The position numbers and the translations under genes are program-made. Positions 1,414 to 13,056 of a stretch of 64,000 nt of DNA are shown here, piece after piece; the stretch's first letter is position 1; each line of letters starts with the position of its first letter. A model generated the notes under the pieces. That model was not told where the DNA came from. It made no database searches and was given only the letters and a program-made list of their open reading frames with translations. The stretch lies in the sequence record NC_014636.1; one strand, given 5' to 3'.

Positions 1414-1806
1414 TTAGCCGAACAAAGAAAGTAGCTTGGTATCTTCTGCTTTCAGATTATCCACGATTGCTTTCAGTTCAGCATAACGAATCGAGCAACG
1501 ACCACTATTCACGTTGATGCCTGCCTCTTTCAGAGCGGACAACGGGATAGATTTCAAGTTGTCGAAATAGATGTCGTTGGTGTTGACTTCTTTGCCGGTT
1601 GCAGTGCCAGAACGAATGCTGGTGATCTCTGCAAAATACGCTTTGTTCCCTTTGTCAACGATGGCGATGTACTTCATCTTGTTGACACGTTCCTCCGCAC
1701 CGATGAAGCCTTTAGCACGTTTCAGAGCAATCATTCGCTCAAAAGTCAGGCAGCCAGCAGCGTCATCTTGGTCACGGCTCGGGATTACTACGATGGTATC
1801 TTGCAT
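1414..1806 (-). CDS. Hypothetical early protein
   Basis: Start moved to MQDTIV (GAGG SD, downstream of early promoter). Confidence 0.8.
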   Translation of the reverse strand: MQDTIVVIPSRDQDDAAGCLTFERMIALKRAKGFIGAEERVNKMKYIAIVDKGNKAYFAEITSIRSGTATGKEVNTNDIYFDNLKSIPLSALKEAGINVNSGRCSIRYAELKAIVDNLKAEDTKLLSLFG

Positions 1807-1838
1807 GATTTCTTCCTCAGTTTTGTTTCGATGTAGAC

Positions 1839-1867
1839 ATATTAACAGGACAGAATCGTGAGTCAAC
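1839..1867 (-). promoter_or_regulatory. Early sigma70-type promoter
   Basis: GTTGAC-N17-TAATAT with TG extension; conserved leader CATCGAAACAAAACTGAGG. Confidence 0.8.
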
Positions 1868-1872
1868 AACTT

Positions 1873-2145
1873 TTATTTATTTTTCGGGAAACCCAGAACA
1901 CTAAAGCCAGCCGACTCACACAACTGAATAACAGATTGAACATCCTGATATTCGTTGTTTGTGCAATACGCTTGGCGATCTTCCAGAACAAGACTCAGAT
2001 ATGGGTCTACCTTGCCTGCATACTTACAATCGCGATCTTTTGCGCGTTTCAACGCATCATCGCAATCCAGCTTGGTATAAGCCACGCGAGTTGTAATCCA
2101 GACGTTGCGAAAGTTAGGGGCAATGAAAACACATACTTTAGTCAT
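1873..2145 (-). CDS. Hypothetical early protein
   Basis: ORF with GAGG SD behind promoter. Confidence 0.8.
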   Translation of the reverse strand: MTKVCVFIAPNFRNVWITTRVAYTKLDCDDALKRAKDRDCKYAGKVDPYLSLVLEDRQAYCTNNEYQDVQSVIQLCESAGFSVLGFPKNK

Positions 2146-2172
2146 GATTTGTTCCTCAGATTTGATGCGACC

Positions 2173-2201
2173 ATCATATCACGGTCGCACATTACGTCAA
2201 C
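2173..2201 (-). promoter_or_regulatory. Early promoter with inverted repeat around -10
   Basis: GTTGAC-N17-TATGAT; TGCGACC/GGTCGCA arms. Confidence 0.8.
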
Positions 2202-2207
2202 AACCTT

Positions 2208-2291
2208 TTAGAAAATTTTCGGCAGAATCGCAGCGACGATGCCAAGAACAGCAATCACCACGATCAGTTCGATAAGAGTAAAACCTTTCAT
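2208..2291 (-). CDS. 27-aa type IV prepilin-like peptide (N-terminal methylation motif only)
   Basis: Manual translation MKGFTLIELIVVIAVLGIVAAILPKIF*; GAGGA SD 7 nt upstream; follows stop of upstream gene by 3 nt; matches G|FTLIE class III signal, hydrophobic helix and Pro22. Confidence 0.9.
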   Translation of the reverse strand: MKGFTLIELIVVIAVLGIVAAILPKIF

Positions 2292-2294
2292 TTT

Positions 2295-2552
2295 TCATTC
2301 CTCACATTGAGATAGAATTTTAAAACCTCTCTGACGCAGAGCTTCCCGCATATCAGAAAATGCTTGAAATTTGGACTCGGAAGTAATCATATACTTATCA
2401 GTTTCGATATCGTTGATATCCAACTCAGGAAACGCTTCATGAAACCGACGCAGTGCCACAGTGGAAGAGTGAGCTGCCATGCCATCGATGTTAGATGATA
2501 CGAAAGCCAGCTTACGTTTGTGATTCACGAAAGTGCGAATTTGATGTTCCAT
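2295..2552 (-). CDS. Hypothetical early protein
   Basis: Start moved to MEHQIR (GAGG SD). Confidence 0.8.
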   Translation of the reverse strand: MEHQIRTFVNHKRKLAFVSSNIDGMAAHSSTVALRRFHEAFPELDINDIETDKYMITSESKFQAFSDMREALRQRGFKILSQCEE

Positions 2553-2587
2553 GATGTGTTCCTCAGTTGTTTTGTTTCGATGTGGAC

Positions 2588-2616
2588 ATCCTATCAGGTC
2601 TAATCCATGTGTCAAC
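2588..2616 (-). promoter_or_regulatory. Early promoter driving 2295-2552 and the mini-pilin
   Basis: GTTGAC-N17-TAGGAT, TG extension, leader CATCGAAACAAAACAACTGAGG. Confidence 0.8.
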
Positions 2617-2633
2617 TACTTTTTGAAAATAAA

Positions 2634-2653
2634 AATCCGCCCGAAGGCGGATT
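2634..2653 (-). terminator. Terminator after nrdB
   Basis: AATCCGCC-TTCG-GGCGGATT + T-run. Confidence 0.9.
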
Positions 2654-2655
2654 AG

Positions 2656-3786
2656 TTAAACTTCTAGTTCTTCGAAGAACTCGGCATCCAGCGTCGGGTC
2701 AACTTGACCAACGAGATAGCTAGACAACTCGGCTTCCTGTGCTGCTACTTGAACACTTTCACTATTCAGCCACTTGCGAATCCACGGCAGAGGATGCTTG
2801 CTTGGAACGTTAAGCTCTTCTGGAATAGGCAGACCAGCTGACTGCATACGGCTCGCAGTCAGATAATCGATATAGTCCAGCATAGATTGCAGACTAAGAC
2901 TAGGGATAGAAACTCGACTCAACAGATCACGCGCCCATTCTTTTTCTTGTTCGGCAGCGTCCAGAAAAATCTGAACAGCCTTTGACTCAAGACGTTTAGC
3001 AATATCAACCATTTCTGGGTCATCTTCGCCGTTTTGCCAAGTGCGAATTTGATACTGGGTGCCTTTGAGGTGCAATTGTTCATCACGCGCAATCAGTTTC
3101 ATGATCTTAGCGTTGCCTTCCATCAAACCGCGTTCGGCAAACGAGAAGGTGCAGGCGAAGCTTACATAAAAACGAATCGCTTCCAAAGCGTTTACCGCGT
3201 GTTTGGCGAGATACAGAGCTTCTTTTACTTTAGTCAGTTGTTGAACTTGCAGACCAGCCGGGAATACTTGACAGCACAACATATCATAGGTGCGTTTCTC
3301 GCGAATCAGATCGTCGTAATACTGAGTCACGGCAGTGGCGCGTTTCATGATCTTTTCATCGAGCATGATCCTATCAAACACTTCGGTCGGATTCACATAC
3401 AGATTCCGCATGATGTGAGTATACGAACGGCTGTGAATCGTTTCACTAAAGCTCCAAGTAGTGATCCAAGTCTCCAGCGCGATGTCTGACACCATTGGCA
3501 AGAAAGTCAAGTTAGGTGCGCGACCCTGAACAGAATCAAGCAGACTTTGATATTTCAAGTTTTGAGTGAACACATATTGTTCGGCTTCTGTCAAGCGACT
3601 GAAATCAATCATGTCCTTAGACAAATCGACTTCTTCGGGGCGCCAGAAAAATGAGAGCTGTTTCTCGGTAAGCTTGTCAATGACAGGATGCTTCACAGTT
3701 TCATAACGAGCGAGACCCATCGCATCACCAAGATACATCGGAGCCTTCATATGGTCAACTACATTTTTGTTAAATACGGTATCCAA
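2656..3786 (-). CDS. nrdB: Class Ia ribonucleotide reductase beta subunit
   Basis: FFWRPEEVDL, ETIHSRSYTHI, EAIRFYVSFAC, RDEQLH, C-terminal QVAAQEAELSSY; no intron. Confidence 0.98.
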   Translation of the reverse strand: MDTVFNKNVVDHMKAPMYLGDAMGLARYETVKHPVIDKLTEKQLSFFWRPEEVDLSKDMIDFSRLTEAEQYVFTQNLKYQSLLDSVQGRAPNLTFLPMVSDIALETWITTWSFSETIHSRSYTHIMRNLYVNPTEVFDRIMLDEKIMKRATAVTQYYDDLIREKRTYDMLCCQVFPAGLQVQQLTKVKEALYLAKHAVNALEAIRFYVSFACTFSFAERGLMEGNAKIMKLIARDEQLHLKGTQYQIRTWQNGEDDPEMVDIAKRLESKAVQIFLDAAEQEKEWARDLLSRVSIPSLSLQSMLDYIDYLTASRMQSAGLPIPEELNVPSKHPLPWIRKWLNSESVQVAAQEAELSSYLVGQVDPTLDAEFFEELEV

Positions 3787-12474: not shown

Positions 12475-13056
12475 TTACGGAATTTGATAATCTTTTTCGA
12501 TTTCATCGAATTTAGATTTTACAGCTTCTTTCATTTCTTGATTATGAATCGGACAAGTCCGATCAACATGATAGAACGGATCGCCTTTCGTGTGCTTCGG
12601 ACAGGTGCATCCTGGTACATTGTATTCATGGAAAGATGCATCGAGATCGAAACCCCATAGAGCTTGCAAGCGGAATTCAATATCTTTCAGATCTGCAAGG
12701 ATTTCCGCAATCGTTTCATTGTTGATATCTCGCAGTTTCGCAGCGGTATCCGCATCGTGCTTTGAATAATCTTTCTTTGAGTAGTAAACGAGATTCTCCA
12801 TCGCACGTTTCCGCATGGTATGCAGTTTGCCGATTGCATGAATTGAGTCTTCATTCAGACCGCGATCCGTAGCGACTTTCATGTTTACAGTGGTGCGACT
12901 TTGCTTGAGTGAAAGAATCCATTCATCTTTCATCTTTTTCAAAAGATCCGCAACATGAGGTCGGTCTTTCGCTTCGAGCGCACCTAATCCTTTTATTACA
13001 TCGGCATGGGTACGGGTAATGTGCCAAAGTTCGGCATCGGTAATAAGTCTTTTCAT
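12475..13056 (-). CDS. Hypothetical protein with CTCP...CPIH putative metal site
   Basis: Start moved to MKRLIT (ATGA overlap). Confidence 0.75.
   Translation of the reverse strand: MKRLITDAELWHITRTHADVIKGLGALEAKDRPHVADLLKKMKDEWILSLKQSRTTVNMKVATDRGLNEDSIHAIGKLHTMRKRAMENLVYYSKKDYSKHDADTAAKLRDINNETIAEILADLKDIEFRLQALWGFDLDASFHEYNVPGCTCPKHTKGDPFYHVDRTCPIHNQEMKEAVKSKFDEIEKDYQIP

Follow-up and report, generated by a model that had tools for sequence, protein, structure and literature searches.

Phage phiAS5 (NC_014636; Straboviridae, Chrysonvirus), a phage of A. salmonicida with a genome of 225 kb, carries a 27-codon ORF for a peptide that resembles the bare N-terminal helix of a type IV pilin. 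This ORF, which we refer to as the mini-pilin gene, is a genuine gene and not an accident, as indicated by its conservation and by the purifying selection acting on it. Within the pattern-defined samples that we analyzed, the pilin-like genes of phages are systematically miniaturized, and the phiAS5 gene is the headless end of this series. Judging from its sequence and from analogy with known systems, the mini-pilin would be a mimic of the pilin segment alpha1-N that jams the type IV filament machines of the host, a working proposal that we hold at a little short of even confidence.

The window, i.e. the whole stretch of 64,000 nucleotides that was analyzed, has its position 1 at position 124001 of NC_014636. 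The neighbourhood of the mini-pilin gene is an early block that is read leftward and comprises nrdA, nrdB, three small ORFs and nrdD. Within this block, the mini-pilin CDS occupies positions 2208..2291 of the minus strand (27 codons followed by TAA) and translates as MKGFTLIELIVVIAVLGIVAAILPKIF; the GenBank record of phiAS5 contains no annotation for it. The upstream, co-transcribed early gene is phiAS5_ORF0170 (2295..2552, minus strand; 85 aa; phrog_23306), the stop codon of which (TGA at 2297..2295) is separated from the ATG of the mini-pilin by a gap of 3 nt. The Shine-Dalgarno sequence GAGGA (2299..2303, minus strand) lies 7 nt before this ATG, within the last codons of ORF0170. When the minus strand was read again, a 27-aa ORF preceded by GAGGA at 7 nt and starting 3 nt past the stop of an early gene was found exactly as a preliminary description of this DNA had reported.

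Consensus scans predict an intrinsic terminator after nrdB (2634..2653, minus strand), where a new transcription unit would start, and a TG-extended early-type sigma-70 promoter (TTGACA-16 nt-TAGGAT; 2588..2615, minus strand) that matches the consensus at 10 of 12 positions. This predicted promoter, running from 2615 to 2588, agrees with the earlier placement of the mini-pilin under an early promoter at 2588-2616, and the predicted transcription unit is made up of the promoter, ORF0170 and the mini-pilin gene. The next early-type promoter predicted by the scan (TTGACG-16 nt-TATGAT; 2173..2200, minus strand) is located only a few bases past the mini-pilin stop codon, which leaves no room for a pilin head or the remnant of one. 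A block of about 83 nt at window positions 2549-2631 (minus strand), consisting of the tail of the nrdB terminator, the early promoter and the leader, is about 76% identical to 132 records of Klebsiella T4-like phages. This match is confined to the promoter block and the flanking coding sequence is without a match, which points to an early promoter cassette that is either conserved or mobile.

The likeness of the peptide to type IV pilins is recognized by two curated profiles, PF07963 (Pfam N_methyl; E = 2.5e-9, 36.7 bits, cutoff 21.2) and TIGR02532 (E = 3.8e-9, 36 bits, cutoff 16.3). Since both scores are above the curated cutoffs, the class III signal and alpha1-N segment noted in the preliminary description are confirmed. 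A basic leader that ends in Gly(-1) is followed by Phe(+1) and Glu(+5), an arrangement (M-K-G, then F-T-L-I-E) that is identical in all seven phages compared below. The phiAS5 precursor is accordingly laid out as the leader M-K-G and, after the predicted cleavage site, FTLIELIVVIAVLGIVAAILPKIF. Cleavage at this site would leave a mature peptide of 24 aa with E5, G14 and P21 (mature numbering, Phe = 1), a GRAVY value of 2.5 and a computed helix length of about 36 Å. A proline at position 22, as originally described, is present in the Aeh1 and PX29 versions of the peptide (P22) but not in that of phiAS5, which is one residue shorter and has P21 instead; G14 is kept in phiAS5 and in the mini-pilins of all the relatives. 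The globular alpha-beta domain of pilins is absent: the stop codon comes 24 residues past the predicted cleavage site, and the full-length models of GspG, GspH, PilA and PpdD aligned to residues 2-26 only, far under their cutoffs. Both the stop position and the failure of these models confirm the initial observation that the protein has no globular head.

A six-frame scan of the whole 225-kb phiAS5 genome for a GFTLIE-like motif joined to a hydrophobic stretch returned the mini-pilin as its sole match. The finding of a single class III signal in the entire genome means that chance is no viable explanation. The 225-kb genome contains no annotated pilus, T2SS or prepilin peptidase gene and no second pilin-like ORF, so that any partner of the mini-pilin must be supplied by the host. 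The gene is not associated with genes for type IV filament assembly, being situated between nrdB and nrdD. Judged by its sequence, the peptide resembles pilin alpha1-N and yet falls short of full membership in the pilin family, as it has neither a globular domain nor a linkage to assembly genes. Like bacterial type IV pilins and T2SS pseudopilins it has G(-1), F(+1), E(+5) and a hydrophobic alpha1-N with G14 and proline helix breakers; it differs from them in the absence of the globular domain, in the lack of a link to assembly genes, in being encoded by a lytic phage, and in its size (24 aa when mature, compared to a median of 161 aa for the bacterial ORFs with the same start, among the matches listed).

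To place the phiAS5 gene among its relatives, the gap between nrdB and nrdD was translated for seven Aeromonas T4-like phages, namely phiAS5, phiWae14, Aeh1, Ah1, avDM12, AsFcp_4 and PX29. All seven, with the genera Chrysonvirus, Cinqassovirus and Angelvirus among them, keep a mini-pilin of 27-29 codons (31 in one annotated form) in this gap. Common to 7/7 are the start M-K-G-F-T-L-I-E-L, G14, and a stop one or two residues past P-x-[IL]-F. The sequence of phiAS5 (Chrysonvirus) and of phiWae14 (no genus in the record; 97% identical to phiAS5) reads ..VLGIVAAILPKIF up to the stop, and that of Aeh1 and Ah1 (both Cinqassovirus) reads ..ILGILFSVVAPAIF, with one substitution in Ah1. The avDM12 sequence (Chrysonvirus) is the same as that of Aeh1, AsFcp_4 (Angelvirus) has the Aeh1 sequence with one substitution, and PX29 (Angelvirus) has MKGFTLIELLVVVAIIGILASVSIPALFH. 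Among the first 14 residues, 13 are identical between phiAS5 and Aeh1. The Shine-Dalgarno sequence is conserved as well, GAGGA being found with a 6-nt spacer in Aeh1, Ah1, AsFcp_4, avDM12 and phiWae14, and also before the second ATG of PX29.

The mini-pilin gene carries no annotation in phiAS5, phiWae14, Ah1, AsFcp_4 and avDM12, five of the seven phages. The other two versions are annotated: the GenBank note of Aeh1p044 (NP_943922, 28 aa) reads 'similar to N-terminal sequence of bacterial secretion protein pilin', that of PX29 gp038 (YP_009011467, annotated with 31 aa) reads 'similar to N-terminal part of fimbrial protein (pilin)', and in UniProt both bear the name of a prepilin-type N-terminal cleavage/methylation domain protein. 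The statement in the preliminary description that no headless mini-pilin was known in a lytic T4-type phage therefore does not hold, as Aeh1p044 and PX29 gp038 had already been flagged in GenBank and UniProt. By its sequence the phiAS5 peptide is a clear member of this Aeh1p044-type phage family: it shares with Aeh1p044 and PX29 gp038 the nrdB-nrdD slot, the M-K-G-F-T-L-I-E-L start, G14, the P-x-[IL]-F end and the context of a Shine-Dalgarno sequence and an early promoter. It differs from them in being one residue shorter (P21) and in its C-terminal half, which is ..GIVAAILPKIF as compared to ..GILFSVVAPAIF.

Two annotated starts in PX29 deserve a comment. The annotated start of gp038 (L006:1206-1301, plus strand; MKMKG..., 31 aa) directly abuts the GAGGA with zero spacer, while a second ATG 6 nt further on gives the usual M-K-G leader and a product of 29 aa. 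The spacing of the Shine-Dalgarno sequence favours the second ATG as the true start, and the 29-aa form is the representative of the database cluster to which the PX29 mini-pilin belongs. The annotated start of PX29 gp037, which overlaps as TAATG, likewise looks too early when it is compared to phiAS5 ORF0169 and to its own GAGGA.

The relatives were also inspected for a full-length pilin interrupted by a recent nonsense mutation and for loss of the ORF, and neither was seen; what they keep is the short ORF and the position of its stop. A recent nonsense mutation of a full-length pilin can be ruled out because the stop is kept across three genera and is directly followed by a promoter. A split pilin, with its head encoded downstream or reached via a frameshift, can also be ruled out, because the gene downstream differs between the phages: after the mini-pilin follows phrog_31756 in phiAS5 and PX29, phrog_23814 in Aeh1, and nrdD itself in Ah1 and AsFcp_4.

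The substitution pattern between phiAS5 and Aeh1 (Nei-Gojobori) gives a more quantitative view. Over the full mini-pilin, pS is 0.72 and thus saturated, while pN is 0.20; for the first 14 codons the values are 0.66 (pS) and 0.03 (pN), and the second half evolves fast with a pN of 0.38. Synonymous saturation combined with low pN implies purifying selection, which constrains the signal and the N-terminal half of the helix the most. Moreover, the pN of 0.03 in the first 14 codons implies that selection acts on the GFTLIE signal and the helix itself, beyond mere hydrophobicity. These values bear on the possibility that the ORF is a non-functional relic, i.e. a stub left from the 5' end of a host pilin gene that the phage captured, neither translated nor under selection. 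Its very short length and the missing annotation in phiAS5, phiWae14, Ah1, AsFcp_4 and avDM12 would fit such a stub. However, the ORF and its stop position are kept across three genera at a pS of 0.72 and a pN of 0.20, a Shine-Dalgarno sequence and translational coupling are present, the mini-pilin is kept while flanking genes vanish, and the promoter a few bases past the stop leaves no head remnant. From the sequences, an untranslated relic is largely refuted, and we regard it as highly improbable.

The content of the nrdB-nrdD gap varies, and the mini-pilin gene is the only gap gene that is present in all seven phages. PX29 is without phrog_23306, Ah1 and AsFcp_4 are without phrog_31756 and phrog_23814, and Aeh1 has an extra gene. 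For phrog_23306, phrog_31756 and phrog_23814 there was no Pfam match and no function has been assigned. The phiAS5 region at window positions 1414-2660 (minus strand) and the corresponding gaps of the relatives are a cassette region, in which the small ORFs of phiAS5 each have an early-type promoter (at 2615, 2200 and 1866). With respect to the adjacent ribonucleotide reductase genes, the record of Aeh1 (L003:1-2462) annotates a mobE homing endonuclease gene that interrupts nrdA and separates nrdA-A from nrdA-B, unlike in phiAS5, where nrdA is intact and encodes 744 aa.

The variable neighbourhood is relevant for the view that the mini-pilin is a generic small membrane peptide whose likeness to pilins reflects ancestry only, and which might block DNA entry in the manner of Imm, modulate a transporter or the membrane potential, or act as a partner of ORF0170. 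Tiny membrane proteins are indeed common among phage early genes, and the mini-pilin is translationally coupled to phrog_23306 in 6/7 phages, the upstream gene and the mini-pilin gene overlapping as ATGA in five relatives. A 28-aa variant without a proline on a viral contig (L031, see below), which is set among other small hydrophobic ORFs, also fits with this view. On the other hand, PX29 has the mini-pilin without phrog_23306, which rules out an obligate two-gene module of ORF0170 and the mini-pilin, and the near-invariant M-K-G-F-T-L-I-E-L amid synonymous saturation is hard to explain if nothing reads the class III signal. On balance, we consider a generic membrane peptide rather unlikely.

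The mini-pilins of the Aeromonas T4-like phages are not isolated among phages. A blastn search with three DNA versions of the mini-pilin gene gave matches in 129 phage records. Pilin-like proteins of other large lytic phages include KVP40.0030 of the Vibrio schizoT4 phages (66 aa, phrog_13280), ORF097c of 44RR2.8t in the Aeromonas 44RR2.8t/31 group (72 aa, phrog_11263), the annotated gp018 of the T5-like Aeromonas phage AhSzw-1 (37 aa), a protein of the Xanthomonas phage BUDD (82 aa), and the 'pilin' of the cyanophages S-CAM7 and ACG-2014f (phrog_3433), which is annotated with 100-123 aa and has 117-128 aa when counted from the nearest upstream ATG. The T5-like phage AhSzq-1 contains an unannotated pilin-like ORF of 41 aa, MFKKSKGFTLIELIIVVAIIIIIVSIVLHMFTGGGVLTTCP, between gp023 and gp022 (L010:1010-1135, plus strand; NC_047949, approximately 9513-9388), and when the 41-aa version from T5-like Aeromonas phages was used as a query against protein databases, 2 proteins only were found. 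Like the phiAS5 gene, KVP40.0030, ORF097c, AhSzw-1 gp018, the BUDD gene and the cyanophage pilin genes encode the N-terminal domain, and their neighbours in these large lytic phages are small genes of the early or auxiliary kind. These other short pilins keep a C-terminal part of 10-100 residues, often with a pair of cysteines, whereas phiAS5 keeps none. At least six phage pilin-like families are represented in PHROGs, one of them labelled 'pilin' in the category moron, auxiliary metabolic gene and host takeover; the class of 27-31 aa is covered by none of the pilin-like families of PHROGs.

To compare the lengths of phage and cellular ORFs with this start, one degenerate DNA pattern for M-K-G-F-T-L-I-E-L was run on IMG/VR and on bacterial and archaeal genomes, which gives samples that are defined by the pattern and do not amount to a full census. 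In IMG/VR there were 17 loci, and the distinct ORFs have lengths of 27, 28, 28, 28, 29, 37, 49, 57, 61, 65, 70, 72, 82, 87 and 181 aa, so 14 of the 15 are shorter than 100 aa. The bacterial and archaeal genomes gave at least 120 loci, with 112 complete ORFs among the matches listed that have a minimum of 64 aa and a median of 161 aa. Only one of these 112 listed ORFs is shorter than 100 aa, and the difference between the viral (14/15) and the bacterial samples (1/112 among the matches listed) corresponds to a p-value of 1.4e-16 in Fisher's exact test. In metagenomes, where a 12-residue version of the pattern was used, 70 of the 74 complete ORFs were 125-200 aa long.

Several of the short ORFs found in this way were inspected individually. 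Two ORFs from human-gut metagenomes (L198:994, plus strand, and L169:951, minus strand) start with MKGFTLIELIVVIAIIGVLAAI.. and end after 28 and 63 aa, respectively, with unrelated tails; by their sequences they seem to be ordinary gut pilins cut short by a frameshift or a contig end, and not true mini-pilins. An independent headless variant of 28 aa, MKGFTLIELVVNIATTGFVAACLYILFT, was found at positions 12502-12588 (plus strand) of the IMG/VR contig 3300045974_000102 (L031, 115.9 kb). It has no proline, is preceded by a strong Shine-Dalgarno sequence (GAGGAG) and is directly followed by another small hydrophobic ORF; its neighbour genes gave no informative PHROG match. Some short viral pilins with 61-82 aa (L032:725-973, plus strand; L034:8582-8397, minus strand; L039:2321-2136, minus strand; L040:13239-13027, minus strand; L199:7148, plus strand) form a subfamily in which alpha1-N is followed by only about 35 residues between two cysteines (C-x-GG[YF]-x-F ... 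G-x-x-C), a segment that looks like a minimal disulfide-bonded head.

In its broadest form, our proposal would be that large lytic phages (T4-like, T5-like and jumbo) repeatedly captured host pilins and cut them down to 27-90 residues, which would turn them into dominant-negative 'poison subunits' of the type IV filament machines in the host, with the bare alpha1-N of the Aeromonas T4-like phages as the minimal natural inhibitor of pili and the T2SS, one that acts on the substrate side and not on the motor. In this general form the idea is possible but doubtful. The phage-wide miniaturization of pilins itself does not appear to have been described before.

For the phiAS5 mini-pilin, we infer translation, membrane insertion, processing, target and benefit as follows. 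The peptide would be made early in infection from a promoter used by the host RNA polymerase, and once translated it would enter the inner membrane, its N terminus staying on the cytoplasmic side. The prepilin peptidase of the host, TapD in Aeromonas, would recognize it and probably cleave and N-methylate it. The result would be a subunit complete in its intramembrane contact surfaces (F1, E5, G14 and P22-x-aromatic) but lacking the globular domain. Such a subunit could dock at the sites of pilins or pseudopilins, i.e. at the platform, the alignment proteins or the base of the fibre, where the next subunit could then not be added. As there are few machines per cell, a small peptide could in this way jam the Tap/MSHA pili and/or the pseudopilus of the Exe T2SS within minutes. 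The likely payoff would be that competing phages are deprived of pili as receptors and/or that pilus- and T2SS-dependent activities are shut down. The host type IV filament machinery is suggested as the target because selection is strongest on the element read by the peptidase (the leader, G/F at the cleavage site, and E5), and because G14 and P22-x-aromatic are kept by a phage that has no partner of its own.

Four considerations weigh against the jamming model. A product of 27 aa is shorter than the ribosome exit tunnel, so the co-translational SRP/Sec route of normal pilins is closed to it. The topology of the phiAS5 mini-pilin is uncertain, because its sequence has Lys near both ends. The C-terminal half of the peptide evolves fast, as its pN of 0.38 shows. 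Finally, the machine might just pass over a subunit without a head, since assembly also needs head-head contacts.

The pili of Aeromonas comprise the Tap, Bfp/MSHA and Flp types, and the T2SS depends on TapD as well (PMC3658858). This shared dependence is one argument for a different mechanism, in which the peptide is a decoy that acts on TapD as a competitive substrate or slow-release inhibitor, so that new prepilins and pseudopilins stay unprocessed and both type IV pili and the T2SS run down. The decoy mechanism is also in line with the finding that the recognition element of the peptidase (leader, G/F-x-x-x-E) is the best conserved part of the mini-pilin. However, T4-type phages are generally known to shut off host expression early, which leaves little new prepilin to be blocked, and the pool of mature pilin is already large. 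In addition, G14 and P22-x-aromatic are kept although no need of the peptidase for them is known, which suggests a role after cleavage. The preliminary description had offered two mechanisms, and peptidase titration seems the weaker of them for a lytic T4-type phage, because host expression is shut off anyway while the mature pilin pool persists; we judge it improbable.

The best precedent for activity of a bare pilin helix comes from Caulobacter. The peptide CIP, made up of residues 1-17 of mature PilA, binds TM1 of PleC (its first transmembrane segment), either as an expressed truncation or as a synthetic peptide, and lowers infection by PhiCbK by 77% and attachment by 71% (PMC7196804). It is the closest functional analogue of the mini-pilin, in that a bare transmembrane helix of a pilin is active, pilus function is abolished and infection by a pilus-specific phage is lowered (PMC7196804). 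There are differences as well: CIP is a laboratory truncation or synthetic peptide of a host pilin of type IVc (Flp-type) and its target PleC is specific to Caulobacter, whereas the mini-pilin is a natural phage gene of the type IVa/T2SS type. In P. aeruginosa, PilS is an intramembrane target of PilA (PMC5979040). Intramembrane contacts between minor pilins and FimS have been reported too, and twitching is blocked when any one of the minor pilins is over-expressed (PMC5979040).

These precedents point to a further alternative, namely that the mini-pilin is a signal mimic, which would imitate a full pool of inner-membrane pilin through the transmembrane segments of a PilS-, FimS- or PleC-like kinase and so switch pilus production, c-di-GMP or surface behaviour. 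The transmembrane helix of a pilin alone does signal in this manner and thereby reduces phage susceptibility (PMC7196804), and the reported PilA-PilS and minor pilin-FimS contacts (PMC5979040) are in agreement with it. A transcriptional output is nevertheless of doubtful use when infection shuts off host transcription, and we think that a signal mimic is also quite improbable.

Compared to other phage proteins directed against type IV filament machines, a mini-pilin that jams these machines would stand apart. The small proteins Aqs1 (DMS3) and Tip (D3112) of Pseudomonas phages have been proposed or shown to disable such machines, including the T2SS, and to confer superinfection exclusion (PMC13436744). 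They are described as soluble cytoplasmic binders of the N2 domain of PilB/GspE (PMC13436744), and by this description they are set apart from the mini-pilin, which is a substrate-like membrane helix. We searched the literature on the pilins of Aeh1 and KVP40, on phage pilins, on mini-pilins or decoys and on the envelope proteins of huge phages, and found no functional study; the sole mention of a phage pilin-like gene that we found is that ORF231 of ValKK3 resembles PilE (PMC13142089).

What is new here is the phage-wide miniaturization of pilins, while the gene family itself has had its note in GenBank from the Aeh1 record onwards. The comparison of truncated phage pilins makes a testable general hypothesis out of what had been a curiosity of annotation for 20 years, and the missing annotation in five of the seven phages makes clear that gene callers miss mini-pilins. 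If it is true that the mini-pilin jams or mis-signals the machines of the host, then among the natural inhibitors of pili and type II secretion it would be the smallest, and it would represent a phage strategy that has not yet been described, namely substrate mimicry inside the membrane as opposed to binding of the PilB motor. It would also define by experiment the alpha1-N contacts that suffice for an interaction with the peptidase, with the platform or with sensor kinases, and it would provide a template for peptide anti-virulence agents, as has been proposed for the Caulobacter CIP.
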